64,000 nucleotides of DNA from the sequence record NC_049850.1, one strand, 5' to 3'. Every line of letters starts with the position of its first letter. Positions within the stretch are counted from its first letter, which is position 1. The notes beneath the pieces were generated by a model, which had not been told where the DNA came from, ran no database searches, and worked only from the letters and a program-made list of their open reading frames with translations. Of the stretch, positions 1,497-62,393 are shown one piece after another. The position numbers and the translations under genes were made by a program.

Positions 1497-2963
1497 TTAC
1501 AGCACGATCAGGTCAGTGTTGTGCGCATAAGGCTGCGCAAACCGCTTTGCCAGTTCGGCCCCGGCTTCGGCCGCCGCACGCACCTCACTGAACGTCTGCT
1601 CGTTGAACAGCTTGCCGTCTTCGTAGACGGTGCGCAGGATGTTTTCCCGGGCCCCGAGTTCCGACGACTGAATGACTTCGAGGATGCCGCTCTCGTTGCG
1701 GACCACCGCTAGGTGCCCCTTGAGCGACTTCTTCGACGACGCAGTGATCGGGTCCTTCATAATCCCGGTCCATGCCTCGCGGCCATTCGTGACAGCACTT
1801 GCCTTCTGGGCGTGACCCAGTACGTCCCGGTTGGTAGCTTGAAGCAGTGCGCCACCCATGCCGAATGCTACGTTCTCGGCGCTGAATCCGTGGAGTTCGA
1901 GGGCCCGCAGGATCGCGATGATCGAATCACGGTTCACACCGTCACCCTGAATCACACGCACGCTCGGGTGGAGCACCTTGAAGCCCTTGCTGTTGACGTT
2001 CACGCCGAAGCTTGCGGCCAGCGACTTGACGCAGTACAGCACCACGGAAACCGGGTCTCCCGAGTCCGGGCGAATAACGACACGCCCACCCTTCGACAAG
2101 ACCTTCTCCTTCAACTGCTTGCCCCAGATGTTGTCGACAGCATTGTAGATGTCGTATGCATCCGAGACGCAGGCATACACGCGCCCTTCCCCACCGAACT
2201 TGTCGATCATGTTCGAGTAGGCGTCGGCTTCGCGGTCGCGACCCCACGAAGTCACCGTGAAGTGCTCCATGGCCGGGATCGAGAAACCAGCGGCAGTCTC
2301 GTCGTAGTAACGATGAGCGGCCACCAGTGCCGGAACCGTATCGGTCCCGAGGAAGTTCACGAGGTGGGCCATGCCACCCAGTGCTGCCGTTTGCACCGAC
2401 GATGCGCCACGTGCTCCGAAGTCGTGCAGCATAAACTTAACTGCGGACTCAGGATCGTCACACGTGCGGTTGAGGAACGCGCGCAGGTCCTGCTTGATGT
2501 GCCACGAGAGCGTTGCGACAGCCGTTGCGTACCATACAGCGCGCAACAGTCGCGTCTCCATGAACTGACCGAGTTCTGCGAATCCGGGAGCCGTGTTCCG
2601 CACTTGGTAATACGGGACGTGGTTCGGGACGAGCGTACCCTCGGGCAGAGCCGAAATGCTCACGGGCGGAAGACCACCGTGCTCGTTGACGATGCGCATG
2701 AACTGCTCGTACGGGAACGTTCCCGAGTGAGCCATCGCGATATCACGAGCCTCTTCTACTTGTTCGCGCGTCAGCGGGTTTGCCACGATATTCCGCAACT
2801 CTGCCTGAAGGCCGAAGAAGATGGAAGCGCGGTATTCCTTGTCCGACCGTGCCGAGCAGTACGACGATGCGAACTGGACTCCGGCCGGAAGCTGCTCCGA
2901 ATGGCTCCATTTGTAGCTGTCGGTGTCGAGCGCGAACGAGATAGCGAGATTGGTATTTTCCAT
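1497..2963 (-). CDS. nadV: nicotinamide phosphoribosyltransferase (NAMPT)
   Basis: DTDSYKWSH, LHDFGARG, SIPAMEH, VIRPDSGDP, VIQGDG, AFGMGGALLQ motifs; AGGAG RBS before ATG 2963. Confidence 0.97.
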   Translation of the reverse strand: MENTNLAISFALDTDSYKWSHSEQLPAGVQFASSYCSARSDKEYRASIFFGLQAELRNIVANPLTREQVEEARDIAMAHSGTFPYEQFMRIVNEHGGLPPVSISALPEGTLVPNHVPYYQVRNTAPGFAELGQFMETRLLRAVWYATAVATLSWHIKQDLRAFLNRTCDDPESAVKFMLHDFGARGASSVQTAALGGMAHLVNFLGTDTVPALVAAHRYYDETAAGFSIPAMEHFTVTSWGRDREADAYSNMIDKFGGEGRVYACVSDAYDIYNAVDNIWGKQLKEKVLSKGGRVVIRPDSGDPVSVVLYCVKSLAASFGVNVNSKGFKVLHPSVRVIQGDGVNRDSIIAILRALELHGFSAENVAFGMGGALLQATNRDVLGHAQKASAVTNGREAWTGIMKDPITASSKKSLKGHLAVVRNESGILEVIQSSELGARENILRTVYEDGKLFNEQTFSEVRAAAEAGAELAKRFAQPYAHNTDLIVL

Positions 2964-3040
2964 GATTTGCAACTCCTGTTGCTGAAAGGTTGAGAAACCG
3001 TGTGCTCTTGCTCACGGGTACTACGGCACTGCTCACGCGC

Positions 3041-3364
3041 TCACTCTTGGAGTCGCGCTTCTTCTGACGGCAGGCCAATGTCTTTTGCACCGGCCGCCGC
3101 CAACTCCTTGATCCTGTTGATCGTTGTTTCCTTCATGGAGACATACGAACGCCTTCCGTCTTCCGTGCGCACGGGCACCAGACGCGACTTCGGGAACTTG
3201 TTGATAGCGCAGTCCATCGCATCGTGGATGATAGGTGTCGGGGCCGTTCGGAGACCACGACATGCTGCCTGATCCTTCGGCATGAACTGCCACGCAGGCG
3301 GCCCATCGATGATTCGGATTTGAGCGTTGTCCGGAAATTCGAAAGTTGCCACGCACACCCCCAT
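3041..3364 (-). CDS. hypothetical protein, possible C-terminal ribbon-helix-helix
   Basis: 107-aa ORF between the NAD genes; RSYVSMKETTINRIKELAAA resembles an RHH strand plus helix. Confidence 0.7.
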   Translation of the reverse strand: MGVCVATFEFPDNAQIRIIDGPPAWQFMPKDQAACRGLRTAPTPIIHDAMDCAINKFPKSRLVPVRTEDGRRSYVSMKETTINRIKELAAAGAKDIGLPSEEARLQE

Positions 3365-3414
3365 GAATTAAACAGTACAGCTATTCTGCCAGACTTCGGT
3401 CGATCAGTCAAACA

Positions 3415-4521
3415 TTAATCTACAGGGATGAGATCGATCATCTTCTGGACGATGAAGAAGTGGTCGCTGTACATTTCCTTCGGGTCCAGCAGGCCGAGCG
3501 GCACCCACCGAACTTCCGCGAAGTCGTCGTCGGCCTTCACCTCGATCAGCTTCTCTGCGTCGTTCAGCAGGTACAGGTAGGCGTGCGTGACGATACGACC
3601 ACGCGTCTCGCCACGGTTCGGGTCCGAGAACACATGCTTGAATCGGAAAGCCAGCTTCATCGTGTCACGGCTCACCCGAATGCACGTCTCTTCGACAGCT
3701 TCACGGCACGAAGTGTTGAAGATGGTTTCGCCTGCGTGGGCAAACCCACCCGGCAGCGCCCACAGGCCCTTGCCCGGATTGAACTTGCGTCGCCCCAGCA
3801 GAACGTGGCCACTCTGGATGATCACCGAGTCTGCCGTCGTCATGATCGGCGCGTAGCTCTTGCCCTTGCCATCGCGACCACGGTAGCCGTGCTCTTTCAG
3901 ATACTCCTTCGAGAACTTGATCTCGGCGTTGAGCGCGTCGATCACGTCGAGGTGTGCCCAGCCCCAGTGTTTGAGATAGGATTTCACTTCCGGATGCACG
4001 AGTTCCGTGATATCCGTGATGCCCTGTTCCCAACATTGACCGCCACCGAACAACAGGTTGCGGACCGTCGTTGCGTCCAGCACTTCTCCGTTGACATTGA
4101 AACTGTTGACGCAGCGCGAATCCCACTGCGGGAACTTCTTCAGGTAGTAGGACGAGTCGTCCTTCGAGTGGCCGATCAATCGGACCTCGACCTCGTGACC
4201 GCCAGCCCGAATCATCTGCACGTAGCGGTCGACCTCGCGATGCACGGCCGCCATCCACTTGAAGTCGTTCTCGTGGAGGAAGTCGTCCAGCGTTTCGAAC
4301 GCGATCTTGCTCACATTCTCCTGCTCACCATAGACGGCGCGAAGCATGTCGATCACTTCGCATGCGGTCCACGGATTCTTGACGGTGCGCGGACGGTTTG
4401 CCGAGCCCACCAGAACCAACGTCAGGTCCGAGATCGCAAGACTCGTATCGATGATCTGCTGGTGGCCGAGGTGGAGAGGGCGAAAGCGGCCGATGAAGAC
4501 CGAAAGTTTCTTGATGCTCAT
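3415..4521 (-). CDS. bifunctional NMN adenylyltransferase / ADP-ribose Nudix hydrolase (NadM-Nudix, NatV-like)
   Basis: IGRFRPLHLGH (HxGH) N-domain; C-terminal Nudix box ALPGGF...REAVEET. Confidence 0.95.
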   Translation of the reverse strand: MSIKKLSVFIGRFRPLHLGHQQIIDTSLAISDLTLVLVGSANRPRTVKNPWTACEVIDMLRAVYGEQENVSKIAFETLDDFLHENDFKWMAAVHREVDRYVQMIRAGGHEVEVRLIGHSKDDSSYYLKKFPQWDSRCVNSFNVNGEVLDATTVRNLLFGGGQCWEQGITDITELVHPEVKSYLKHWGWAHLDVIDALNAEIKFSKEYLKEHGYRGRDGKGKSYAPIMTTADSVIIQSGHVLLGRRKFNPGKGLWALPGGFAHAGETIFNTSCREAVEETCIRVSRDTMKLAFRFKHVFSDPNRGETRGRIVTHAYLYLLNDAEKLIEVKADDDFAEVRWVPLGLLDPKEMYSDHFFIVQKMIDLIPVD

Positions 4522-4592
4522 GTGCAACTCCTGTTGCTAGTGGGTTAAAAGCGAGGCTCTTGCCTCACCTACTCTTTACTACGGGGCCCAGT

Positions 4593-4826
4593 TTAAACCG
4601 AAACCCCAAGAAGTTCAAGCTCACCTTTCGTGATCTTGATCTTCAGTCGCGTAACCGCCAGTTCCTTCTGGGCACTACGGATGTCGTAGGCCGCGCGGTA
4701 CGAGATTTGGGACGATTCGTTGAGAAGGTCGACGAGCGCCGTGGTGTCGGCCTCAAGCCCGACCTCGATGATCGAGAGTTTGCGCAGGCGGCGCTTCAGG
4801 ATCGCGATCTTGAATTTCTTGAACAT
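4593..4826 (-). CDS. hypothetical coiled-coil protein
   Basis: ORF; start at MFKK chosen downstream of the terminator hairpin. Confidence 0.6.
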   Translation of the reverse strand: MFKKFKIAILKRRLRKLSIIEVGLEADTTALVDLLNESSQISYRAAYDIRSAQKELAVTRLKIKITKGELELLGVSV

Positions 4827-4829
4827 ATG

Positions 4830-4859
4830 AAAAAGCCCCTGTGGTTTAGACAAGGGCTT
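4830..4859 (-). terminator. terminator after the DNA ligase gene
   Basis: Minus strand AAGCCCTTG...CAGGGGCTT followed by TTT. Confidence 0.65.
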
Positions 4860-4878
4860 ATTCTACAGCAACAACGTT

Positions 4879-6777
4879 TTACGTCAAGTACTTCGTGGTG
4901 AATTGCGCCCACGTCATGGCTTTCGATCCAGCCTTCTCGATCTTGCCCACGAACTTCGCGCCTTCACGGTACAGCAGCACCGTCATCTTCGAGCCGTAGG
5001 GCACAACCGTGCCGCCCAGACTTTCGACTTTGGCCTCTTCGTCCTTTGAACGGTAGCTCGTCCATGCGACGTTGACGCCCGCCAACTTGGTGCCTGATGC
5101 CTGCTTCTTCTGCGGCAGATCGCCGTCGATCTTGATCATGCCTTTGAGCGGCCGATACCATTTGCGGAACTCATACACGCCCTTGACCAGAACTTCGATG
5201 GTGGCGTGCTTGAACCCACGAATCTTCCCGACCTCGTTCCAGATGCCGTGCCTGTCGAGGTTGCAAAGCGTTTTCATGCTCATGCCTGCCTCTTCAAGCT
5301 GTGCCAGTTTCCGGACACCCATACCGCCTTCGGTGAAGCAACCGCTTGCCACCATCAGGGACTTGAGCGAGACCGGAGCGCATAGCACACGCTTCAGTTC
5401 CCGCATCATCTTCGGCCACTGTGCCTTTCCGAACTCGGCAATGCATCCAGCCTCGAACGCCGATGGCAGCGGCTGTGTCGCCACCTGCACCAACTTGTCG
5501 GTCGTCGTGATGCCCATATCGTACAGCTTGGCCAACGACTTCTCCGCGAACTGCTCGATGCCGAGCGTCGTGCAGAAGAAGTGCAGGCGACGCACGTCTG
5601 TCACCGTCGTGTCATTGTCGAGTGCATACACGAACCGACCACGGAACTCATACGGGCCCGGGGGCGGCGTCCATGCCGCGCGCTTGACCGTCCCCACGAT
5701 CTTCGGGATCACGTCGCCCGAGCGCAGAATCCGGACAAGCGCCCCCACACCGATACCCTTCTCCTTCATCCACGTTGCATTGTGGGCCGTTGCCTGCGTT
5801 ACAGTCACACCGTCGATCTCAATAGGTTTGATCTTGATCTTCGGTTGCCAGCGGCCGAGGCGCGTCTTCTTCCACTGGATGGCAATCACCTCTACCACAT
5901 CGGCGTTTGCTTCGTCATTGACCTTGAACGCGAACATTCGCTTTGGCTTGTCCGCGCTATCGTAGTCCATCACGAAGTCCACGGGGCTCACAACAAACCC
6001 GTCCAGCCGGTATGGGCTCAGGTAGCGCGCCTTGTTAAGCTGCTCCGTCAGGTACGCAGCATCCAGCTTGTCCAGACGGCCATAGGTAACGACCTCGAAC
6101 CCCCACGTGTCTGCGTTCTTGAGGCTGCGCAGCAACAGCGTTTCGTCCGCATTCGGGTATATGCCGAGCACGACCAGTGACACGTCCTTGAGAGCCCGTG
6201 ACGACCACGACCGGTTGAACAGGCCGTTGACCATAGCCCGTGCGTTCTCGAACCCGTTCTCACCTGCTGCCTGCTTGCTGTACTTCTTCTGGAACTTCTC
6301 GTCGGCCATCAGGGCTTCGAGGCGCAACACGGTCTGCGCCTTAGTCGGGATAGTGGCCGGGATACGCTTGTACTCCACCAGTTTCGGGATCAGGTACGAC
6401 ACGTCGCGCCCAACCTCACCGTCACCACGGGTGATCAGCATTCTGGGCTTGCGGCCCTTGTACACGAGTTGCAGGCTCGTGCCGTCCAGCTTCGACATCC
6501 CGAAGTACTTGGTGGTCGAAGGCTCGCGCTTTGCGAATTTGGGCACGTCTTCCGGATACGCCTTTTCCAAGCTTGGCATAAAGTGCACGAGTTCGACCGC
6601 TTCCTTTTCGTCCGCTATACGTACGCCAGTCTGGTCGAGTTCTTTCCAGTCCGGCGCACGTTTGCGAAGCTGGTCTTCGAGGTGATCGAATTCCGGATCG
6701 CTGATAATCTCCTTCTCTTCGTTGTAGTACGCCCACTTGGCGCGCACGTACAACTCCTTCATTTCAGAAAGCTTCAT
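4879..6777 (-). CDS. ligA: NAD+-dependent DNA ligase
   Basis: Ia domain (AYYN...ISDPEFD.L), KLDG adenylation motif, YRLDGFVV, OB-fold (RSGDVIPKI), HhH and BRCT-like C-terminus; ATGA overlap with upstream gene. Confidence 0.95.
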   Translation of the reverse strand: MKLSEMKELYVRAKWAYYNEEKEIISDPEFDHLEDQLRKRAPDWKELDQTGVRIADEKEAVELVHFMPSLEKAYPEDVPKFAKREPSTTKYFGMSKLDGTSLQLVYKGRKPRMLITRGDGEVGRDVSYLIPKLVEYKRIPATIPTKAQTVLRLEALMADEKFQKKYSKQAAGENGFENARAMVNGLFNRSWSSRALKDVSLVVLGIYPNADETLLLRSLKNADTWGFEVVTYGRLDKLDAAYLTEQLNKARYLSPYRLDGFVVSPVDFVMDYDSADKPKRMFAFKVNDEANADVVEVIAIQWKKTRLGRWQPKIKIKPIEIDGVTVTQATAHNATWMKEKGIGVGALVRILRSGDVIPKIVGTVKRAAWTPPPGPYEFRGRFVYALDNDTTVTDVRRLHFFCTTLGIEQFAEKSLAKLYDMGITTTDKLVQVATQPLPSAFEAGCIAEFGKAQWPKMMRELKRVLCAPVSLKSLMVASGCFTEGGMGVRKLAQLEEAGMSMKTLCNLDRHGIWNEVGKIRGFKHATIEVLVKGVYEFRKWYRPLKGMIKIDGDLPQKKQASGTKLAGVNVAWTSYRSKDEEAKVESLGGTVVPYGSKMTVLLYREGAKFVGKIEKAGSKAMTWAQFTTKYLT

Positions 6778-6965
6778 TTCACAATCCCGTTGTCTTCGAC
6801 ATGCTTCACGAATTGCGTGATCTCGGTCCACGCGCGATCAAACTTCGGATCGCTGTTCCAGTAGGTGCCAAGCAACGCATCCATTTCGCCCTTGGCACGC
6901 GCCCACGCTTGTGCGCGCATCGTCTTGAGTAGTTGTTCGTTACAGATGGACAATCGTTTCTCCAT
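6774..6965 (-). CDS. hypothetical protein (63 aa)
   Basis: ORF coupled to ligA. Confidence 0.6.
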   Translation of the reverse strand: MEKRLSICNEQLLKTMRAQAWARAKGEMDALLGTYWNSDPKFDRAWTEITQFVKHVEDNGIVK

Positions 6966-7002
6966 AGTCAAAGGGCGGCTCCGAAGAACCGCCCTTGGGG
7001 GC

Positions 7003-7254
7003 TTACACCTCTGCGTGTTCCTCGATGTACTCCGCAAACTGCTGCGGCGTCTGGAGCGTCACGGTCTCGGTGTTGTACTGCTCTTCACCGAAGCTCATGC
7101 TGAACTCGTCTTCGAGGGCCATCAGAAAGTCGGTCAGGTCGAGATCGTCGAAATGGTTCAGAAGTTTTGTGCCCGGAACCACGATCACCGCGTCGTCGCG
7201 CAGCAGGTCTTGGGCTTCTTGCATTACGACCGTCAGAATCTGATGAAAATCCAC
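7003..7254 (-). CDS. acyl carrier protein-like protein lacking the phosphopantetheine serine
   Basis: 83 aa, very acidic; FDDLDLTDFLMALEDEF aligns with ACP DSLD..ELVMALEEEF; ends TPQQFAEYIE. Confidence 0.8.
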   Translation of the reverse strand: MDFHQILTVVMQEAQDLLRDDAVIVVPGTKLLNHFDDLDLTDFLMALEDEFSMSFGEEQYNTETVTLQTPQQFAEYIEEHAEV

Positions 7255-7289
7255 TTGCTTGTTTCCTTTGCTTCGGTTGAGGGTTGGTG

Positions 7290-7742
7290 TTACTTGATGC
7301 CGAGGATTCGGCGGTCTTCGGCACTCAGGCCGTCCAGCAGTTCTTTACGACGGACCGCGTCACGCTTCTGCGCGTCACGCTGTTCTTCCAGATACGCCAT
7401 CGACCGGTCGAAAACCTCGAACTCCCAGTCTTCGGATGCCACGTTGATGAACTCCGTGGTTTCTTCGGTGTGGCTGAAGTTGCCTTGAACGTCAAGGCAT
7501 ACCATCGGGAATTCAATGTCGAAGCCCGGATACAGAAGCGTTGCGCCGTACGCGAACGGATTCTTGATCGCGAATCGCACGTCGAAGCCGAGTGCGGCAG
7601 CGCGTACCATGGCCGCCCATACGCGTGTCTCGTTGGCCTTCAACTTCTCTTCACGCTCACGCTGGGCTGCATCCACCATAGCCTGCGTTTCGGCCTTGGT
7701 GCGCATGCTGCGGGCGCGCGGGGTCACTTTCTTAGTTGCCAT
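7290..7742 (-). CDS. hypothetical protein
   Basis: 150-aa ORF with AAGGAG RBS. Confidence 0.8.
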   Translation of the reverse strand: MATKKVTPRARSMRTKAETQAMVDAAQREREEKLKANETRVWAAMVRAAALGFDVRFAIKNPFAYGATLLYPGFDIEFPMVCLDVQGNFSHTEETTEFINVASEDWEFEVFDRSMAYLEEQRDAQKRDAVRRKELLDGLSAEDRRILGIK

Positions 7743-7750
7743 GATACTCC

Positions 7751-8155
7751 TTATACGAGGGTCGCGATGTGGCCAGCGTGCTTATGGCGCGGCGTATTCA
7801 CGCAGCCTTCAGCACGAATCCGGTTGGTCAGGTAGTCGTCGGCCAGCACATGCATGACGTGCGAACACGTGACATAGGTGTGCGGGCTGTCGTACGACTT
7901 CTGTCGCGCGATCTCGGAGTCGAGACGGTCGCGTTCGACTGCGTAGGTCCAACCGTCCGGCCGCGCGAACCCGTCTTCGTGTTCCGTCCACTCGATGGCC
8001 AGAACCACGGTCCCGGTGATCGGGTGGCCGACCGCACACTCGGGGGCCGGTTGAATCTCCGACTTGATGCGGTCCGTTGCCGGGCTCACAATCTCGCGTT
8101 GATGCCGACGGGCTGCTCGGTGAGCCTCTTCTTCGGCCATTGCAAAATTCATCAT
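7751..8155 (-). CDS. hypothetical protein
   Basis: 134-aa ORF, overlaps upstream stop. Confidence 0.75.
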   Translation of the reverse strand: MMNFAMAEEEAHRAARRHQREIVSPATDRIKSEIQPAPECAVGHPITGTVVLAIEWTEHEDGFARPDGWTYAVERDRLDSEIARQKSYDSPHTYVTCSHVMHVLADDYLTNRIRAEGCVNTPRHKHAGHIATLV

Positions 8156-8832
8156 CGTTTGTCCTCCAGATAGGTGATGGGGCTGTTGCTGTTTTTGAGT
8201 GCCGTAGCCAGTCCGAGGCGCGTCAAAGCTGCCTGAGCGTACGACGTGATTTCGGTCTTTGCCTTCGACAGCGTGTTCTCGATGTACTCACCGAATTGAC
8301 GCAGCACGAAGTTCAGGTTCGACTTCACGTTCATGCGGGCCGACTCGACGTGCCCCAGCAATTCGTCGCGCTGCTTGGAAGACAGCTTCGCTTCCTCTAA
8401 CTTCTCGGCCAGCACATCGAGCGCGTCCAACGCGTTCTGTGCGTACTTCCGTGTGTCAGCCCGGAACTTCGGTGCGACTTCCGCAATGTGCGGAATCTGC
8501 GGAATCGACTGCCCGTTGTAGCGGGTCAGCGTACACGGAACGCCGTTGCCCAGACCCATACTCGACATCAGCGACGCAAACTGAGCTTCCGACATCACGA
8601 TCTCGATCAACTGGCCCGTATGCGACTGCGTGTGCTGGTCTTCAGCGTAGCGTCGATACTGTTTCGACATGTTGATCGTCAGCGAGATCGAGTGCTGGTG
8701 CTCGAAGTCCGAGCCATACAGATACTGGGTGCCGGAGCGACGCGTGATCGCGATCTGGGCAAACGCAGGATGCTCGTAGCGGATACGATCACCCTCGTTG
8801 AACTCCTTCACGTCTTCGAATTGCATTGCCAT
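8152..8832 (-). CDS. conserved phage hypothetical protein
   Basis: 226-aa ORF with AAGGAGG RBS. Confidence 0.8.
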   Translation of the reverse strand: MAMQFEDVKEFNEGDRIRYEHPAFAQIAITRRSGTQYLYGSDFEHQHSISLTINMSKQYRRYAEDQHTQSHTGQLIEIVMSEAQFASLMSSMGLGNGVPCTLTRYNGQSIPQIPHIAEVAPKFRADTRKYAQNALDALDVLAEKLEEAKLSSKQRDELLGHVESARMNVKSNLNFVLRQFGEYIENTLSKAKTEITSYAQAALTRLGLATALKNSNSPITYLEDKR

Positions 8833-8859
8833 GAATCCTCCTTGGTATACAGTGACGCT

Positions 8860-8888
8860 ATTTTATTCTATCAGTCGCTATGCGTCAA
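8860..8888 (-). promoter_or_regulatory. sigma70-like promoter
   Basis: TTGACG-N17-TAAAAT on the minus strand. Confidence 0.65.
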
Positions 8889-9272
8889 CCGTTCCCAGTC
8901 ACGCTTCGTCGGGGACCACGTGTAGCTATTGTCGTCGCCCGATGCGTAGAAATCGAGAGCGCGCAGCGCGCCCGCGCCGTAGCCAGCGTTCGTGAACGAC
9001 TGTGCGAATGTAGCGCCACCCAAGATGACCTTGCGGTGACCGTCGAGCCAGTACAGCGTGTACTGGGACGGGTAGTCGGAGGATTCCGGCGTCGCCATGT
9101 TCAGGATCGACACGTCACTGATGACGTTGGCTTCGGCGTATGCTTCGGCCTCTTCGTAGCTGTCGAAGGGCATCGCGTCTGCAATGTCTAGCGTGTGGCT
9201 GTGGTGGGATTGGAAGCCCTCCGGGTACGTGACGAATCCGAGGCTTGCTTCGTAGAGGTAGTGAGTGGTCAT
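8871..9272 (-). CDS. hypothetical protein
   Basis: 133-aa ORF with AGGAG RBS. Confidence 0.8.
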   Translation of the reverse strand: MTTHYLYEASLGFVTYPEGFQSHHSHTLDIADAMPFDSYEEAEAYAEANVISDVSILNMATPESSDYPSQYTLYWLDGHRKVILGGATFAQSFTNAGYGAGALRALDFYASGDDNSYTWSPTKRDWERLTHSD

Positions 9273-9302
9273 GGCTGCTCCTGTTAAGTTGTCGATGTGA
9301 GA

Positions 9303-9331
9303 ACTATACAGGTCGATTTAATTCAAGGCAA
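9303..9331 (-). promoter_or_regulatory. sigma70-like promoter
   Basis: TTGCCT-N17-TATAGT with extended TG. Confidence 0.7.
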
Positions 9332-9341
9332 GCAAAAAATG

Positions 9342-9366
9342 AAAAACCCCGCACTGGGCGGGGTTC
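9342..9366 (-). terminator. intrinsic terminator
   Basis: AACCCCGC-actgg-GCGGGGTT, with TTTTTC on the minus strand. Confidence 0.75.
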
Positions 9367-9373
9367 AGATGGT

Positions 9374-9550
9374 TTAGGCGACGGCCTCGACCATGCGGCG
9401 GTTCAGGAAAAGCGGCTGCTCCTTGCCCACGAACTGTACGGACACGTAGCTGGGTGGGGCCGAATCGTCTTGGAGGATCACGCCAACCTTGTGTTCCGGA
9501 AACGATTCTGCTGCTGCACCCACCAACTTCACTTGATCACCAACTTTCAT
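9374..9550 (-). CDS. small SH3-like hypothetical protein (58 aa; not in the ORF track)
   Basis: MKVGDQVKLVG...VEAVA; ATG 9550, TAA 9374. Confidence 0.7.
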   Translation of the reverse strand: MKVGDQVKLVGAAAESFPEHKVGVILQDDSAPPSYVSVQFVGKEQPLFLNRRMVEAVA

Positions 9551-9552
9551 GA

Positions 9553-9915
9553 TTATTGCCTTTCTAAAACAGAGTTGAACGAGCAGGCAAGGTACGCGAG
9601 CAGCAGTGACCCAATCATGGCAAGCACATGGGCACCTGCGTACACAAGGTATCCGATGTCAAGGGCTATGAGCCCAACGAGTATCAGAAACACCCCGACG
9701 TTCCACGGGTGACGAAGCTCACGCCTTTCTTCATCTGGTAGATGCCGAAAACCAACGCCCAAAAAGAACGAGGCAGTACCGTCGACGAAGAACAGGGCAA
9801 ACAGAAAAATCCAGTAGCCCCATTGGAGGTGTGCGGAGATCGCACACGCGGTCAGCAGCAGCCGGGTAGCCGCGAAGCTGAACCTCTTCACCCACCATCC
9901 TACAAACGACCGCAT
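9553..9915 (-). CDS. membrane protein
   Basis: Several hydrophobic segments; GGAG RBS before ATG 9915. Confidence 0.7.
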   Translation of the reverse strand: MRSFVGWWVKRFSFAATRLLLTACAISAHLQWGYWIFLFALFFVDGTASFFLGVGFRHLPDEERRELRHPWNVGVFLILVGLIALDIGYLVYAGAHVLAMIGSLLLAYLACSFNSVLERQ

Positions 9916-10125
9916 AAACCAACTCCATAGCTGAGTTTCGATCACATGGCTCGGACCGAGCCCGCGACTTAGAGGGGTGGAGCCCTCCACCCTCTATTTA
10001 CTGCAACGTCAACGAGTCCCGCCATGGTGGGGCCGGTTGACGCGATTTTGACACTTATTACAGCAAACATGTGGGAAAAACAGATTCCCAATTTTATTTT
10101 ACACTAAACCTCCATGGAGAAAGTT

Positions 10126-11031
10126 ATGGGAACGTCAAAATGGGACGCCGCTTCTATAGCGGCCGAAGCAAAGCACTACACACAACCGACAGAATTCCGT
10201 CGAGGGTCCCATGGCGCGTACGTAGCGGCTCAGCGCCTAGGGATACTGGACGAGGTGTGCAAACACATGACGTTCAGACGCAAGCTCACGAAGGAGCACG
10301 TACTGAATGTCGCGCGTTCATACAAAACCCGCGTGGACTTTGCGCGCGGTGCAGAATCGGAATACGGGACCGCTCGAAAGAACGGATACCTAGATGAAGC
10401 GTGTGCACACATGCAACGAAAACTCAAGTGGACCGAATCCAGTGTAGCAGCAGAGGCCGCAAAGTACACGAAGCGCTATGACTTTGAACTCGGCAGTCCG
10501 AACGCCTACAGCGCAGCCAAACGACTTGGCATCTATGATCAAGTATGTAGCCATATGGAATACAGCAAGCGGCATAGACTGACGCTCACGGAGATTCGCA
10601 AAATAGCAAAAACGTACAAGACGCGCAAGGAATTCCAGACCGGTGACACCAGCGCGTATAACTGCGCAATCCGCAACGAGTGGCTTGATTCCGTGTGCGC
10701 CCATATGGAACGCGGGGCTACCGGCTTCAACAATGACAAGCCCGGCACACTATACCAGATACTTCTCACGACTCCTACGGGCACGCGTCTATGGAAGATA
10801 GGCATTACGAACGGTCCCGTCACCAAACGGCTTGCTTCAATGGGCGTTCCACGGAACGTACACGCCGAAGTTGTGTGCACCGTGCATTTCCAAAACGGCA
10901 AGGAAGCACGACAACTAGAAACAAAGCTGCACGCACGAGGAAAGCGTCGCGGAGTGCACTACCAAGGCGAGCCCATCCTACGCAGCGGCAACACAGAATT
11001 GTTCCTGAAGCCGCTGATTAAACTCACGTGA
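10126..11031 (+). mobile_element. free-standing homing endonuclease: four ~47-aa N-terminal repeats plus a C-terminal GIY-YIG-like (T5orf172-type) domain
   Basis: Opposite strand to neighbours, lower GC; repeats A..Y....F..G...Y..A...G.LD..C.HM; LYQI...WKIGIT...E..LH...GNTELF. Confidence 0.7.
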
Positions 11032-11623
11032 GGTTGTGGTGATCGGTAACCTCGTTGTTGCCGATCAATTCCTTGATCTCACGGAAGGAGAACGGACGAT
11101 ACTCACCCAGCACCTTGATGGAATTGTCCCAACCAATGTCAAAGATGCGGCGTTTGCTTAGCTCGGCCATCGATTCACCGTAACCGCTACCGTGCAGATG
11201 ACCATGCAGCATCCACGATCCATGCTTCGCTTTATTCCAAGCAAGTTCGGGGTGGTGGTTGAGCACAATGTTCACGCCGTCGTGCTTGATGTACAGGCGA
11301 TGCTCGTGCACTTCCTTGAACAAACCGGACGATTTGTAGAAATCGACCAAACGGTCGTCGTGATTGCCACAGATCAGGAATTTGTTCGGTGTTTCGATCC
11401 GTTCGATCAAAGCTGCTGCTTCCCACTTGGAACCGAACGCAATGTCGCCGCCGAAGTAGATGACGCCACGCGGACCTACCGTCTCGTTGATACGGGACAC
11501 GATCCACTGGTTGTGGCTGGGCATGTCGCTGAACAGGATACCGCGACGCGTGTACTGGAGAATCGCGTTGTGGTTGAAATGCAGGTCTGCCGTGAACCAC
11601 GGCCCGTTGTCTTTTTGTGTCAT
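11024..11623 (-). CDS. calcineurin-like metallophosphoesterase
   Basis: TADLHFNH, FGGD, CGNHD, LHGHLH motifs. Confidence 0.9.
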   Translation of the reverse strand: MTQKDNGPWFTADLHFNHNAILQYTRRGILFSDMPSHNQWIVSRINETVGPRGVIYFGGDIAFGSKWEAAALIERIETPNKFLICGNHDDRLVDFYKSSGLFKEVHEHRLYIKHDGVNIVLNHHPELAWNKAKHGSWMLHGHLHGSGYGESMAELSKRRIFDIGWDNSIKVLGEYRPFSFREIKELIGNNEVTDHHNLT

Positions 11624-11659
11624 GTTGCCTCCTTATTCAAGGTATTGCAGTTTAATCAG

Positions 11660-12088
11660 TCACACGCGCTCGCGCAATCCTTTCTCCCAATTGCACGGGC
11701 CGCACATGGTCGTCATGTTATGTTGCGCATCGGCCCCGCCATTAGCACGACTCACCGTGTGATCGTGCGTGAAGATCACTTCTTCACCGTCACGAAAGCC
11801 CCACATGTTCATGTGGAACGGACCATCCGAGCCTTTCTTGGTGGCCGTGCGCTCGACCGCGAAATGGGTGGCTTCCAGACCGCATGACGAGCACGTGGTG
11901 CCATGGTTGGCGAAGCAGCGCAGACGCTTGCTGGTCGTGTGGACCTCCAGACCGGGGGCGACTTCAGTGCGGCGCTCTTTCTCCCGCAACTTCATGTCAG
12001 CGACGATGGCACGGAGGCCGGTGCCCAGTTCGAGAGTGGCGATACGTTCGTAGTTGCCGCAGCGATTGCTGATTTTCGAGATTTGCAT
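11660..12088 (-). CDS. HNH endonuclease
   Basis: CSSC...THDHTVSRANGG...NMTTMCGPCNWEKG. Confidence 0.85.
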   Translation of the reverse strand: MQISKISNRCGNYERIATLELGTGLRAIVADMKLREKERRTEVAPGLEVHTTSKRLRCFANHGTTCSSCGLEATHFAVERTATKKGSDGPFHMNMWGFRDGEEVIFTHDHTVSRANGGADAQHNMTTMCGPCNWEKGLRERV

Positions 12089-61499: not shown

Positions 61500-62393
61500 A
61501 TGTCCAAACTCGTAACCGTGCAGATCAAGCCACGGTCGTTTCTTCAGAAGAAGTTCTCCGCTGGCCAGATGTGGTTCTTAGCCGAGCCCATTGCCATTGA
61601 CGGGGTGTACAACGGCAACTACGAGGTTGCTATCGCTGGCGGTAGGCACGTGATCAGTGGCCGCAGCCTGAACGTTCAGACGTGGACCACTTACGAGTCG
61701 CCTGTAGAGTTGCTGACGCGCCTAAACGGCCACATCTACTCGACAAGCGGCGGTCCCACCAAGCACGTGGAACTGCGGCCCGAGGACGTTCAGCCTCCGT
61801 CACCGCCCGAGCGCACGTTCGTCATGATCGACATCGAGAGTCTGGGGCTGCGCGTAGGATCGCCTGTCCTGTCTATCGGGGCGTGCGCCGTGCAACGCGG
61901 TCTCGGCATCATCGATGAATTCAGCGTCGTGCTCGATCTTCAAGAGCAACTGGACAAGGGCGCGAAGGTAGAGGCCGACGCCTTCTACTGGTGGCTGCGC
62001 CAGCCCGAAAAGCCGCGTCTTGCCATCGCAGGCCCAGACGTGAAGTACTCGACGCTGGAAGAGGCGCGCGAGCAACTGACCCACTTCTGGGCGCGCGTAG
62101 AGGCCCACCCGTGCGTCGTGGGTGGTAGCGTGTTCGCGATGGCCCTCGGCAACGACTTCGACCTCGCACAACTCGACCTGTGGTTCAATGGCAACGTGCC
62201 ATGGCACTACCGCGACAAGGTGTGCCTGCGCGCCCTGATCAACACGCACCCGAACTCGGTGGTGTGGGATAGCGAGGACAACTTCGGCAAGGATCGCGAA
62301 GACCTGCACACGGCACTCGGTGACGCGAAGGCCCAATCCCGGATGCTCATGCGCATGGTCGCCCGCCATCCCGAAATCTCGCAGGTGGTGTGA
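61500..62393 (+). CDS. DEDDh 3'-5' exonuclease with an N-terminal extension
   Basis: MIDIESLG, GNDFD, HTALGDA. Confidence 0.88.
   Translation: MSKLVTVQIKPRSFLQKKFSAGQMWFLAEPIAIDGVYNGNYEVAIAGGRHVISGRSLNVQTWTTYESPVELLTRLNGHIYSTSGGPTKHVELRPEDVQPPSPPERTFVMIDIESLGLRVGSPVLSIGACAVQRGLGIIDEFSVVLDLQEQLDKGAKVEADAFYWWLRQPEKPRLAIAGPDVKYSTLEEAREQLTHFWARVEAHPCVVGGSVFAMALGNDFDLAQLDLWFNGNVPWHYRDKVCLRALINTHPNSVVWDSEDNFGKDREDLHTALGDAKAQSRMLMRMVARHPEISQVV

Follow-up and report, generated by a model that had tools for sequence, protein, structure and literature searches.

A serine-less acyl carrier protein homologue of Burkholderia jumbo phage BcepSaruman and its possible role as a cofactor-free mimic of host ACP

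Acyl carrier proteins (ACPs) are among the most connected hub proteins of bacteria. A member of this fold lacking the phosphopantetheine-attachment serine has been described for Plasmodium falciparum, the mitochondrial ACP (mACP) of which carries phenylalanine in place of serine and binds Isd11 (PMC8547962). Apicomplexan mACP was reported to act in a cofactor-free manner via conserved acidic residues, and the phenylalanine itself adds to the interface (PMC8547962). In Escherichia coli, apo-ACP also docks on clients in its cofactor-free state: it inhibits glycerol-3-phosphate acyltransferase more than holo-ACP does, overproduction stopping growth (PMC3896788), and the ATPase of MukB is stimulated equally by apo-AcpP and holo-AcpP (PMC8602292). 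Furthermore, ACP modules are carried by freshwater jumbo phages (PMC13573597).

The protein described here, gp119, is encoded by the lytic Burkholderia jumbo phage BcepSaruman and bears the GenBank label 'acyl carrier protein-like protein'. Its gene is located in the window, that is, the stretch of 64,000 nucleotides from sequence record NC_049850.1 that was analyzed, and is represented by the following features:

7003..7254, minus strand: gp119 (BcepSaruman_119, QBX06532.1), 83 aa, as given by the open reading frame and its translation
7144..7146, minus strand: codon GAT for Asp37, the phosphopantetheine-attachment serine position and first residue of helix II, as placed by alignments to ACPs
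7099..7149, minus strand: residues 36–52, DxLD motif and helix II (the 'recognition helix'), as placed by alignments
7063..7098, minus strand: residues 53–64, the loop following helix II and the short helix III, as placed by alignments
7264..7268, minus strand: Shine–Dalgarno-like AAGGA, 9 nt 5' of the gp119 start codon

The gene starts with GTG and ends with a stop codon at 7003–7005. Its product is strongly acidic (pI 4.05; 19 acidic versus 2 basic residues; net charge about −17). Residues 35–52 read F-D-D-L-D-L-T-D-F-L-M-A-L-E-D-E-F-S, the motif including the preceding residue being H-F-D-D-L-D.

The stretch D36-D37-L38-D39 was aligned on the canonical D-S-L-D of ACPs by phmmer against the PDB, by MAFFT (with five true ACPs taken into the alignment of the gp119 clade), by hhalign, and by a local hmmsearch. 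All 62 of the 62 PDB phmmer matches listed were named ACPs or an ACP-type subunit. The hhalign comparison of the gp119 clade with true ACPs reached a probability of 97.5% (E 5e-12, 70 columns), and when a true-ACP profile was run against all six reading frames of the entire phage genome, the gp119 open reading frame came first among 3762 pieces (E 1.8e-10); the likeness is therefore beyond chance. Scores for single families were low, with 13.8 bits for Pfam PP-binding (PF00550; gathering score 20.8), 23.1 bits for TIGR00517 (AcpP; curated threshold 70.45), and a weak match to PHROG 5934 (phage ACP; E 9.8e-4, 20.2 bits) covering residues 35–63 alone (29 residues). The AlphaFold (AF2) model, built on a 7-sequence alignment that included true ACPs, reached a pLDDT of 85.2 and placed helices at residues 3–18, 37–51, 57–60, and 70–80. 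Its best 50 PDB matches in Foldseek were carrier proteins (TM 0.62–0.83; 0.72–0.83 for solved ACPs), and an independently modelled ortholog from BFVD was superimposed on it with TM values of 0.93–0.96. As judged from sequence comparison and the predicted model, gp119 is a genuine four-helix ACP-fold protein of solid ACP ancestry. This bears out the first-pass annotation, which had recognized an ACP-like open reading frame at 7003–7254 with an intact helix II (LMALEDEF): the fold was recovered by hhalign, AF2, and Foldseek, and D36, D39, D42, E48, D49, and E50 are all present.

Compared to bacterial type II AcpP, gp119 shares the length class of about 80 aa, the four-helix fold (TM about 0.8), the strong acidity, and the D-x-L-D ... 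M-A-L-E-D-E-F helix II with the motif at its N-cap. It differs in the replacement of serine by aspartate (glutamate in the ortholog), in its sub-threshold family scores, in a 4-residue insertion, and in being encoded by a lytic jumbo phage with no annotated Fab, PKS, or PPTase gene as a neighbour. The insertion relative to canonical ACPs, located within residues 53–64, is clade-specific, and the pattern FGEE-x-YN-x-ET is kept there in both lineages of the clade.

The first of these lineages comprises the Sarumanvirus phages BcepSaruman and BcepSauron, and the second an uncultivated, syntenic jumbo phage (L002/P0002) with 51–53% identity, its ortholog being found on 848 contigs. No relatives beyond these were detected in an exhaustive phmmer search of 1.84 billion representative proteins, and no further clade members in a word-indexed search of 5.8 billion proteins using the single sequence and a 2-sequence profile. 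A third lineage was found neither by tblastn of both orthologs against 50,697 phage records nor by pattern scans of IMG/VR, JGI metagenomes, and GTDB genomes. All other matches (L004–L013 and L017–L019) were rejected as clade members, being canonical DSLD ACPs.

Identity between gp119 and the ortholog is unevenly distributed, amounting to 74% (28/38) in residues 27–64 versus 31% (14/45) elsewhere (Fisher p 1.6e-4); within residues 36–52, 13 of the 17 positions are identical to an ortholog of 51% overall identity. The clade and the five true ACPs all share D36, L38, D39, M45, E48, E50, and F51, and the acidic residues of helix II named above are invariant between the gp119 lineages. The acidic docking face, which runs from the end of loop I through helix II and loop II to helix III, is thus kept. 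For gp119, pN (0.31) was lower than pS (0.59), and the dN/dS values are upper-bound estimates, with dS being saturated (>1). On this comparative evidence, gp119 is a gene kept by purifying selection, with conservation focused on the predicted ACP docking face (residues 27–64). That it represents a decaying ACP remnant, having lost its function together with the serine and persisting by drift, is already disfavoured and is given a very small chance here. Decay would account for scores below curated ACP thresholds and for the very small family, and a sporadic change from serine to asparagine is present in one Vibrio phage with serine-keeping relatives; however, the frame has stayed intact in two lineages despite the saturated dS, pN is lower than pS, the docking face is largely identical, both orthologs are modelled with a confident fold, and the D/E exchange is conservative.

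The charge of about −17 over 83 residues and the low pI would also suit a generic acidic mimic of DNA or another polyanion, blocking a defence nuclease or a nucleic-acid-binding protein of the host in the manner of the acidic mimics Ocr, ArdA, and T7 gp5.9. The ACP ancestry would then merely have provided a compact scaffold of acidic character. The gp119 neighbourhood holds genes for NAD salvage and DNA/RNA repair, gene types that are often tied to counter-defence, and a viral DNA mimic reportedly inhibits an SMC complex. However, ACPs are all similarly acidic, so the charge of gp119 is inherited and not acquired. Moreover, conserved positions cluster on the ACP docking face and are not distributed over the whole surface, and carrier proteins lead the fold matches, the listed ones including no DNA mimic. 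A PADLOC search found nothing either, but its library holds defence and not anti-defence proteins. Altogether, a mimic of nucleic acid is considered highly unlikely.

Residue 37 is aspartate (GAT) in both Sarumanvirus phages, the independently sequenced gp119 gene of BcepSauron being nucleotide-identical to that of BcepSaruman (0 differences in 252 nt), whereas it is glutamate (GAG) in P0002 and all its cluster variants. Since any serine codon is separated from GAT by two or more base changes, since the BcepSauron gene is identical, and since the other lineage encodes glutamate, Asp37 is neither a sequencing error nor a private mutation. A change from DSLD to DDLD by the codon GAT at 7144–7146 had been pointed out in the first-pass annotation, and Asp37 sits exactly there; the suggested check for homologs keeping the serine was run, and no clade member has it. 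As a residue lacking a hydroxyl occupies the serine position, 4'-phosphopantetheinylation is chemically excluded there. The earlier proposal of a non-modifiable protein thus agrees with the predicted chemistry, according to which a phosphopantetheinyl transferase (PPTase) has no residue to load at position 37 and gp119 cannot shuttle acyl groups.

That gp119 might still be a carrier, using another residue or another chemistry, or that Asp37 might be an artefact or private mutation after all, is hardly credible. Ser52 is kept in both lineages, and the same phage encodes a serine-keeping carrier domain in gp422, as would be compatible with a carrier function; however, in the AF2 model, Ser52 is located at the C-terminal end of helix II, away from the N-cap, and PPTases recognize the helix II N-cap, as known from ACP–AcpS structures. 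Among the 446 annotated features of the genome, most genes being labelled 'hypothetical', no PPTase, Fab, PKS, NRPS, Lpx, acyltransferase, or lipid enzyme is named. The error explanation is opposed by the codon distance, the two identical genomes, and the glutamate on 848 contigs.

The fixed acidic residue effectively rests on one ancestral substitution and one D/E exchange in two lineages. Helix capping or helix-dipole stabilization also favours acidic residues at helix N-caps, and with a single substitution event and a single exchange, a 'phosphomimetic' role is indistinguishable from such an effect. By analogy, an Asp or Glu side chain in place of the serine may partly stand in for the charge of the cofactor phosphate; arginine residues of ACP partners contact this phosphate (PMC8547962), which makes a charge-mimic role of Asp or Glu plausible.

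The phage ACPs likened to gp119, namely PHROG 5934, the ACP of Salmonella phage ViI, and the ACP of Burkholderia phage BCSR5, belong to a wider set. Large phages often encode small proteins or domains of the carrier fold, to which no function has been firmly assigned. Unlike gp119, the phage ACPs compared here keep the serine, namely those of L004 (VDSLD), L005 and BCSR5 (ADSLD), CcrBL10 (FDSLD), and Vibrio phages (MDSLD, CDSLD). Serine loss as a trait of an 'F-D-x-L-D' subgroup of phage ACPs was considered and dropped, with CcrBL10 keeping the residue; an asparagine variant in Vibrio phage 277E43-1 was likewise dropped as support for such a subgroup, being isolated among serine-keeping relatives. 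In the BcepSaruman genome, two further carrier-like domains, which the first-pass annotation had overlooked, were identified in gp347 and gp422. The domain of gp422 keeps the serine, and that of gp347 appears from its sequence to have lost it; gp119 was rejected as a paralogue of the gp347 domain (BLASTP E = 2).

The genes and signals surrounding gp119 bear on the question of its partner and include the following features:

7290..7742, minus strand: gp120, an orphan protein of 150 aa (pI 5.6), directly upstream of gp119 with a 35-nt gap
6971..6996, minus strand: GC-rich hairpin with an 11-bp stem and a UUCG loop, starting 6 nt past the gp119 stop codon and followed by only UUU
8860..8888, minus strand: sigma-70-like promoter match TTGACG-17-TAAAAT upstream of gp122, a consensus match only

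No family in Pfam or PHROG was found for gp118, gp121, and gp123, and gp122 matches solely PHROG 6452 (function not assigned), next to a weak JetA match below threshold. For gp120, profile searches of Pfam, PHROG, PADLOC, and the PDB returned no match. Its AF2 model (pLDDT 77.6) shows the order helix, three strands, helix, and no meaningful Foldseek match was obtained, the best being T7 Gp1.2 (E 0.09, TM 0.2–0.3). The N-terminal 18 residues of gp120 are basic, with 12 of the 18 being invariant, and the first 10 residues have a pLDDT of 48. In L002, an ortholog with 33–36% identity is also located directly upstream of the ACP-like gene, so that the two genes are adjacent in both lineages, whereas the genes on both flanks differ. 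The distribution of gp120 equals that of gp119, comprising the same two lineages alone in the 5.8-billion-protein search; P0020 was rejected as a third gp120 lineage, since it belongs to the L002 lineage and merely has a variant C-terminus.

The hairpin behind gp119 (dG −20.9 kcal/mol, z −2.4) has a counterpart with U5 at the same place behind the L002 gene. Both hairpins were spotted by eye and then folded, their z-scores being modest, and a consensus terminator scan did not call either of them; the element at 6971..6996 probably closes a gp120–gp119 unit, serving as a terminator, as an attenuator, or to stabilize the RNA. The promoter match at 8860..8888 is a possible start of a gp122–gp121–gp120–gp119 transcript. 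The L002 genome has a match closer to the consensus (TTGACA-18-CACAAT, extended by TG) directly before the gp120 ortholog, and the gp119 ortholog starts with TTG and is preceded by GGAG.

By linkage, gp120, which the first-pass annotation had not considered, is a candidate partner of gp119. This opens a second explanation, in which gp119 would belong to a phage complex as a dedicated subunit, working with gp120 or another phage protein and having no host client. It draws on the conserved adjacency amid differing flanks, on the identical restriction of both genes, on the L002 promoter-like site and closing hairpin, and on the conserved basic N-terminus of gp120, the low pLDDT of which is expected of a peptide folding on an acidic surface. 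Several of the solved complexes matched by the gp119 fold also contain an ACP as an accessory subunit, and AcpM binds mycobacterial membrane enzymes. A serine-less ACP with a co-evolved partner provides a precedent (PMC8547962). On the other hand, synteny is general over this 20-kb region in both phages, and the adjacency alone is therefore weak evidence; gp120 has no recognizable fold or motif; and a private partner does not require a canonical AcpP-type helix II. On balance, a purely phage-internal subunit is a serious contender, if somewhat less likely than a mimic of host AcpP.

The comparison with apicomplexan mACP is one of functional analogy only, not of common descent. Both proteins are serine-less ACP folds retained under selection; however, mACP has a hydrophobic replacement and a known co-evolved partner (Isd11–Nfs1), whereas gp119 is viral, has an acidic replacement, and shows no LYR-type protein as an evident counterpart. 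E. coli apo-ACP, which docks on clients in the cofactor-free state, is the functional model for a non-modifiable ACP, with the difference that it is transient, being converted to holo-ACP by AcpS, while gp119 would stay locked in the cofactor-free form.

Most likely, gp119 works by binding other proteins. We tentatively prefer, with a probability of roughly 0.4, the reading that it is an ACP derivative serving as a cofactor-free docking mimic of host AcpP, probably together with gp120. We infer that such a non-modifiable mimic would operate by protein–protein binding alone: its helix II face would dock on the basic patch with which one or several clients bind AcpP, the charge of Asp37 or Glu would partly substitute for the cofactor phosphate, and gp119 would thereby be a dead-end competitor of host AcpP. 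Both proteins would probably be made from one transcript and act together, gp120 providing a second binding surface or being itself the docking partner via its conserved basic N-terminal peptide. Counted against a decoy are the non-ATG start codons of both orthologs (GTG and TTG). Host AcpP reaches about 100 µM in E. coli (PMC8602292), so that, to compete, gp119 would have to be very strongly expressed or bind with higher affinity. Given the sub-threshold ACP scores and the 4-residue loop insertion, docking specificity may have drifted from the host AcpP clients. In addition, conservation of helix II is equally expected with a phage-encoded partner.

Regarding the clients, the first-pass annotation had listed SpoT, MukB, LuxI-type AHL synthases, and HlyC-type acyltransferases as targets, and the fit of this list is uneven. 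MukB accepts apo-AcpP and fits in this respect, but to our knowledge MukBEF is a gamma-proteobacterial system absent from Burkholderia. The other candidates fit poorly, since SpoT needs holo-ACP, and acyl-ACP is the substrate of LuxI-type AHL synthases and HlyC-type acyltransferases. A bolder version, which we regard as improbable, is that of a permanently 'pseudo-holo', charge-mimicking gp119, as the first ACP mimic known from a virus, which would occupy the ACP-docking site of an AcpP-sensing host regulator or defence component, alone or with gp120. Here, Asp or Glu would replace the cofactor phosphate, so that partners rejecting apo-ACP would accept gp119, and candidate targets would be a SpoT-type lipid-starvation checkpoint or an ACP-dependent envelope or defence enzyme. 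If true, host stress signalling or lipid metabolism would be uncoupled from infection.

Serine-less ACPs are already known from apicomplexan mitochondria, and gp119 adds an acidic, phage-borne case to them. Should it merely be one subunit within a phage complex, this would amount to a modest refinement of annotation. Carrier-fold domains of large phages are, however, heterogeneous, gp119 having lost the serine, gp347 appearing to have done so, and gp422 keeping it, and phage 'acyl carrier protein' labels are therefore not to be read as lipid metabolism before the serine has been checked. With 83 residues, a single diagnostic position, and a single candidate partner gene, the case is compact and testable. 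An unloadable viral ACP fold with its docking helix would be a natural probe of cofactor-independent ACP interactions, and gp119 could be a factor of a new type for host takeover or counter-defence.

BcepSaruman is a jumbo myovirus of B. cenocepacia with a genome of 263,735 bp (MK552140.1), to which window positions 5000-12000 were 100% identical by megablast; BcepSauron, the second isolated Sarumanvirus phage, matched the same segment with 99.2%. Window position 1 equals position 62001 of the record. The gene under study and its decisive codon are located as follows:

7003-7254, minus strand: gp119 (BcepSaruman_119, QBX06532.1), 83 residues, GTG start, AAGGA upstream
7144-7146, minus strand: GAT codon of Asp37, at the serine position of the D-S-L-D motif

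The product was deposited in GenBank as 'acyl carrier protein-like protein', and its resemblance to acyl carrier proteins (ACPs) is already on record; a paper describing the missing serine, or the conservation of its loss, was not found in the literature. The protein has a pI of 4.05, with 19 Asp/Glu and two Lys/Arg residues, and residues 35-52 read F-D-D-L-D-L-T-D-F-L-M-A-L-E-D-E-F-S. Phosphopantetheinyl transfer requires the serine hydroxyl, and gp119 can therefore not be a carrier at the Asp37 site. Translation of the open reading frame reproduced exactly the coordinates, the GAT codon and the intact 'LMALEDEF' reported in the first-pass annotation.

Single-sequence searches for ACP homology were weak but unanimous. 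Pfam PP-binding matched with an E-value of 0.07, under the gathering score, and the NCBIfam acyl_carrier models with 5e-5 to 6e-3, far under their cut-offs; PHROG 5934 ('acyl carrier protein') was recovered with 1e-3, and a phmmer search of the PDB returned 62 sequences (best E-value 0.014), every one listed being an ACP. Profile methods settled the homology: comparison of a two-sequence clade profile with five true ACPs by hhalign yielded a probability of 97.5% (E-value 5e-12, 70 columns), and a true-ACP HMM ranked the gp119 reading frame first when the phage genome was scanned as 3762 six-frame pieces (1.8e-10). In all alignments (PDB phmmer, clade with true ACPs, hhalign and HMM search), D36-D37-L38-D39 fell on D-S-L-D. 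The AlphaFold2 model, based on a seven-sequence alignment (pLDDT 85.2, pTM 0.70), features helices at residues 3-18, 37-51, 57-60 and 70-80, representing the ACP layout, with Asp37 opening helix II as the counterpart of Ser36 in AcpP. The top 50 Foldseek hits in the PDB were carrier proteins, reaching TM-scores of 0.83, and the ortholog's BFVD model, which was built independently, superposed with TM-scores of 0.93/0.96. Profile probability, model confidence and fold matches thus bear out the ACP identification proposed earlier.

The gp119 family is tiny. An exhaustive phmmer search of 1.84 billion representative proteins retrieved only two matches, namely P0002, a protein cluster of 81 aa (53% identity, E-value 1e-17), and P0003, a 217-aa tandem ACP with normal DSLD in both motifs. 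Nothing beyond BcepSauron and ordinary DSLD ACPs emerged when proteins were searched by word index, phage records by tblastn, and IMG/VR, JGI metagenomes and GTDB genomes by scanning. P0002 is encoded on L002 (Logan SRR10682410_462), a contig of an uncultivated jumbo phage collinear with BcepSaruman (Nudix, RtcB, YqeY, HNH, ACP-like gene, NAD-ligase, NMNAT-Nudix and NAMPT), with protein identities of 26 to 88% in the collinear stretch. Its motif reads R-F-D-E-L-D, placing Glu (GAG) at the serine position in all variants of the cluster, and the BcepSauron copy of gp119 is nucleotide-identical (0/252 differences). Since Glu occurs in P0002 and Asp in the identical BcepSauron copy, and since at least two changes separate GAT from any serine codon, the acidic replacement is ancestral to both lineages, which have reached saturation at synonymous sites (dS about 1.1); the site stayed acidic throughout the clade despite a D -> E or E -> D exchange. 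The possibility, raised in the first-pass annotation, that homologs keep the serine did not hold, as those of the clade carry Asp (BcepSaruman, BcepSauron) or Glu (P0002).

Both orthologs have non-ATG start codons, GTG in BcepSaruman (window 7252-7254, minus strand) and TTG in L002 (10001-10003, plus strand), each preceded by a Shine-Dalgarno-like motif. The P0002 gene (L002 10001-10246) was recorded on 848 contigs (942 Logan blocks), mostly sub-kb fragments, the longest contigs being 229,672 and 317,988 bp. The assemblies were labelled Salmonella, Enterococcus, Staphylococcus aureus, Listeria, Helicobacter pylori, Vibrio cidicii and Pseudomonas aeruginosa, a spread more like that of widespread contamination from sequencing or reagents, or of carry-over between samples, than a true host range. 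The collection of isolated phages does not contain the L002 phage; the nearest records there are BcepSaruman and BcepSauron, with 83% nucleotide identity over the NAMPT gene only.

Codon comparison between the gp119 and P0002 lineages showed purifying selection (Nei-Gojobori pN 0.31, pS 0.59). The resulting dN/dS of about 0.36, an upper bound owing to saturation, lies between the values for enzymes (0.07-0.15) and poorly conserved neighbours (0.47-0.63). Conservation was concentrated in residues 27-64, comprising the end of loop I, helix II, loop II and helix III, where 28 of 38 positions are identical between the lineages versus 14 of 45 elsewhere (Fisher p 1.6e-4). This face is the docking surface of ACPs for partner enzymes. 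The acidic positions D36, D39, D42, E48, D49 and E50 are invariant between the lineages, and D36, L38, D39, M45, E48, E50 and F51 are invariant in the clade plus the five true ACPs; a four-residue insertion after helix II (FGEE-x-YN-x-ET) is clade-specific and conserved in both lineages. Because the face was retained in a protein unable to carry the cofactor, these patterns argue that binding through it is still the selected function.

Two more carrier-like modules of BcepSaruman lie beyond the window, and a further serine-less case was found in a Vibrio phage:

MK552140.1 251736-253589 (L034:20737-22590, another part of the genome), minus strand: gp422, 617 aa, 'hypothetical protein', annotated as 'peptidase' in BcepSauron
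MK552140.1 223155-223688 (L033:42156-42689, another part of the genome), plus strand: gp347, 177 aa, hypothetical protein with a C-terminal PP-binding-like domain
OX241464.1 53589-54122 (L021:2486-3019), plus strand: Vibrio phage 277E43-1 protein, 177 aa, with an N-terminal ACP-like domain

The C-terminal PP-binding domain of gp422 (residues 544-608; 31.2 bits, over the Pfam gathering score) keeps the serine (G-W-D-S-M-D), and weak partial ACP-like segments upstream of it (392-422 and 489-519) may be tandem carrier repeats that have degenerated; of the isolated phages, only BcepSaruman and BcepSauron have gp422. The domain of gp347 scored near the threshold (19.3 vs 20.8 bits), and in the alignment Glu occupies the serine site of its motif (G-L-D-E-H-D), so that it may represent a second serine-less, acid-substituted carrier-like domain in the same phage. 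BLASTP detected no paralogy between gp347 and gp119. The Vibrio phage domain has Asn at this site (G-F-D-N-L-D), followed by a C-terminal extension of ~100 aa; since the serine is present in its full-length relatives (Vibrio phages P018-4 and vB_VibM_10AMN, and IMG/VR contig L023), this loss is separate and sporadic. CcrBL10 and Burkholderia phage BCSR5 also keep it. Judging from these sequences, serine loss in phage carrier-fold domains is occasional, and fixation across divergent lineages was found here for the Saruman clade only.

gp119 is embedded in a long block of early/middle-type genes on the minus strand, in which the following features were recorded:

Minus-strand block, gene order: gp113 NAMPT-like, gp115 NMNAT-Nudix, gp117 NAD-dependent ligase, gp118, gp119, gp120-gp125, then phosphatase, HNH, YqeY-like, RtcB, Nudix
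Window 6971-6996, minus strand: BcepSaruman hairpin, 11-bp stem, UUCG tetraloop, dG -20.9, followed by only UUU
L002 10253-10276, plus strand: L002 hairpin, U5 downstream

None of the 446 annotated features, most of them 'hypothetical', is named as a phosphopantetheinyl transferase, Fab, PKS, NRPS or lipid enzyme, an absence at the level of annotation. The candidate partner gp120, a protein of 150 aa, shares the two-lineage distribution of gp119, and its L002 ortholog (33-36% identity) likewise lies immediately upstream of the ACP-like gene. On either side of the pair the gene content differs: L002 lacks gp121 and gp122, and it carries 244-aa and 70-aa genes in place of gp118. A good sigma-70-like promoter sequence match directly precedes the gp120 ortholog in L002, and a GC-rich hairpin directly follows the ACP-like stop codon in both phages, conserved in placement and different in sequence. 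The BcepSaruman stem ends 5 nt ahead of the gp118 ATG, and the hairpins may serve transcription termination or attenuation, or translational control of the next gene. For gp120, no Pfam, PHROG, PADLOC or PDB match was obtained, and its model (pLDDT 77.6; long helix, three strands, long helix) had no structural neighbour. Its basic N-terminal 18 residues, 12 of them invariant, were modelled with low confidence; such a peptide would suit docking on an acidic surface, which is only a lead.

Elsewhere in the block, gp113 (NAMPT/NAPRTase-like; Pfam NAMPT_N and NAPRTase, seen on the ortholog), gp115 (a nucleotidyltransferase-Nudix fusion, CTP_transf_like and NUDIX) and gp117 (NAD-dependent DNA ligase) form an NAD+ module (window 1497-6777, minus strand). 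It is among the best conserved parts of the region (88%, 74% and 67% identity to L002, respectively) and resembles phage NAD+ salvage or reconstitution pathways discussed as counter-defence against NAD-depleting systems. The sole plus-strand gene in the block, gp126 (window 10114-11031), lacks an ortholog in the collinear part of L002; inspected by eye, the translated sequence comprises about four ~40-aa repeats ending in C-x-H-M and a distinct C-terminal domain, and it looks like an inserted mobile gene of the homing-endonuclease type. gp122 (226 aa; window 8152-8832, minus strand), likewise lacking from that region, matched PHROG 6452 of unknown function (E-value 1e-43); its resemblance to Wadjet JetA (16.7 bits, below the Pfam threshold of 26.2) is probably coiled-coil noise.

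gp119 combines an ACP fold, an acidic residue in place of the serine, a conserved docking face and purifying selection with surroundings in which no carrier function is annotated. It would accordingly be read, rather than as a carrier, as a cofactor-independent binding module docking on a basic ACP-binding site. The literature has examples of ACPs acting in the absence of the cofactor: the apo form of ACP is a stronger inhibitor of glycerol-3-phosphate acyltransferase than the holo form and arrests growth (review PMC3896788), and the Plasmodium mitochondrial ACP (Ser -> Phe) binds Isd11 through acidic residues that are conserved, together with the side chain that replaces the serine (PMC8547962). 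Since the cofactor phosphate is usually in contact with an Arg of the partner (PMC8547962), a role of Asp/Glu as a partial charge mimic is plausible by analogy. Within this frame, gp119, in concert with gp120, would compete for the client sites of host AcpP. Alternatively, it could belong to a gp120 complex as a private subunit; these readings are mutually compatible, and competition for host clients is ranked slightly higher because helix II stayed canonical and did not drift alongside a private partner.

The targets proposed in the first-pass annotation differ in plausibility. AHL synthases and HlyC-type acyltransferases recognise acyl-ACP, so the bare protein would be a poor competitor. We know of no 'ACP-dependent defence', and PADLOC gave no match. 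MukBEF is, to our knowledge, confined to gamma-proteobacteria and absent from Burkholderia, which weighs against MukB in this host. In its favour, MukB accepts apo-ACP, its ATPase being stimulated equally by apo- and holo-AcpP (PMC8602292). SpoT reportedly does not bind apo-ACP (PMC3896788) and as a target would need the charge-mimic idea to be true. Independently of gp119, gp436 (L034:28772-29308, minus strand; MK552140.1 259771-260307), which lies outside the window, is annotated as 'putative guanosine phosphopyrohydrolase' and bears on the stringent-response idea; if the annotation is correct, the phage may act directly on (p)ppGpp-type nucleotides. Any decoy model meets the practical objection that host AcpP is very abundant, with a concentration of about 100 uM in E. 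coli (PMC8602292).

Because gp119 lacks the attachment serine that defines the ACP family and scores below the curated cut-offs, it should be classed as an ACP-derived pseudo-carrier rather than an ACP, with a predicted role as an ACP-fold binding module. The apicomplexan mitochondrial ACP is its closest conceptual precedent and apo-ACP its closest functional model. The hypothesis is compact and cheap to test, and what gp119 adds, in a family of two lineages only, is a viral, acid-substituted ACP without the serine.
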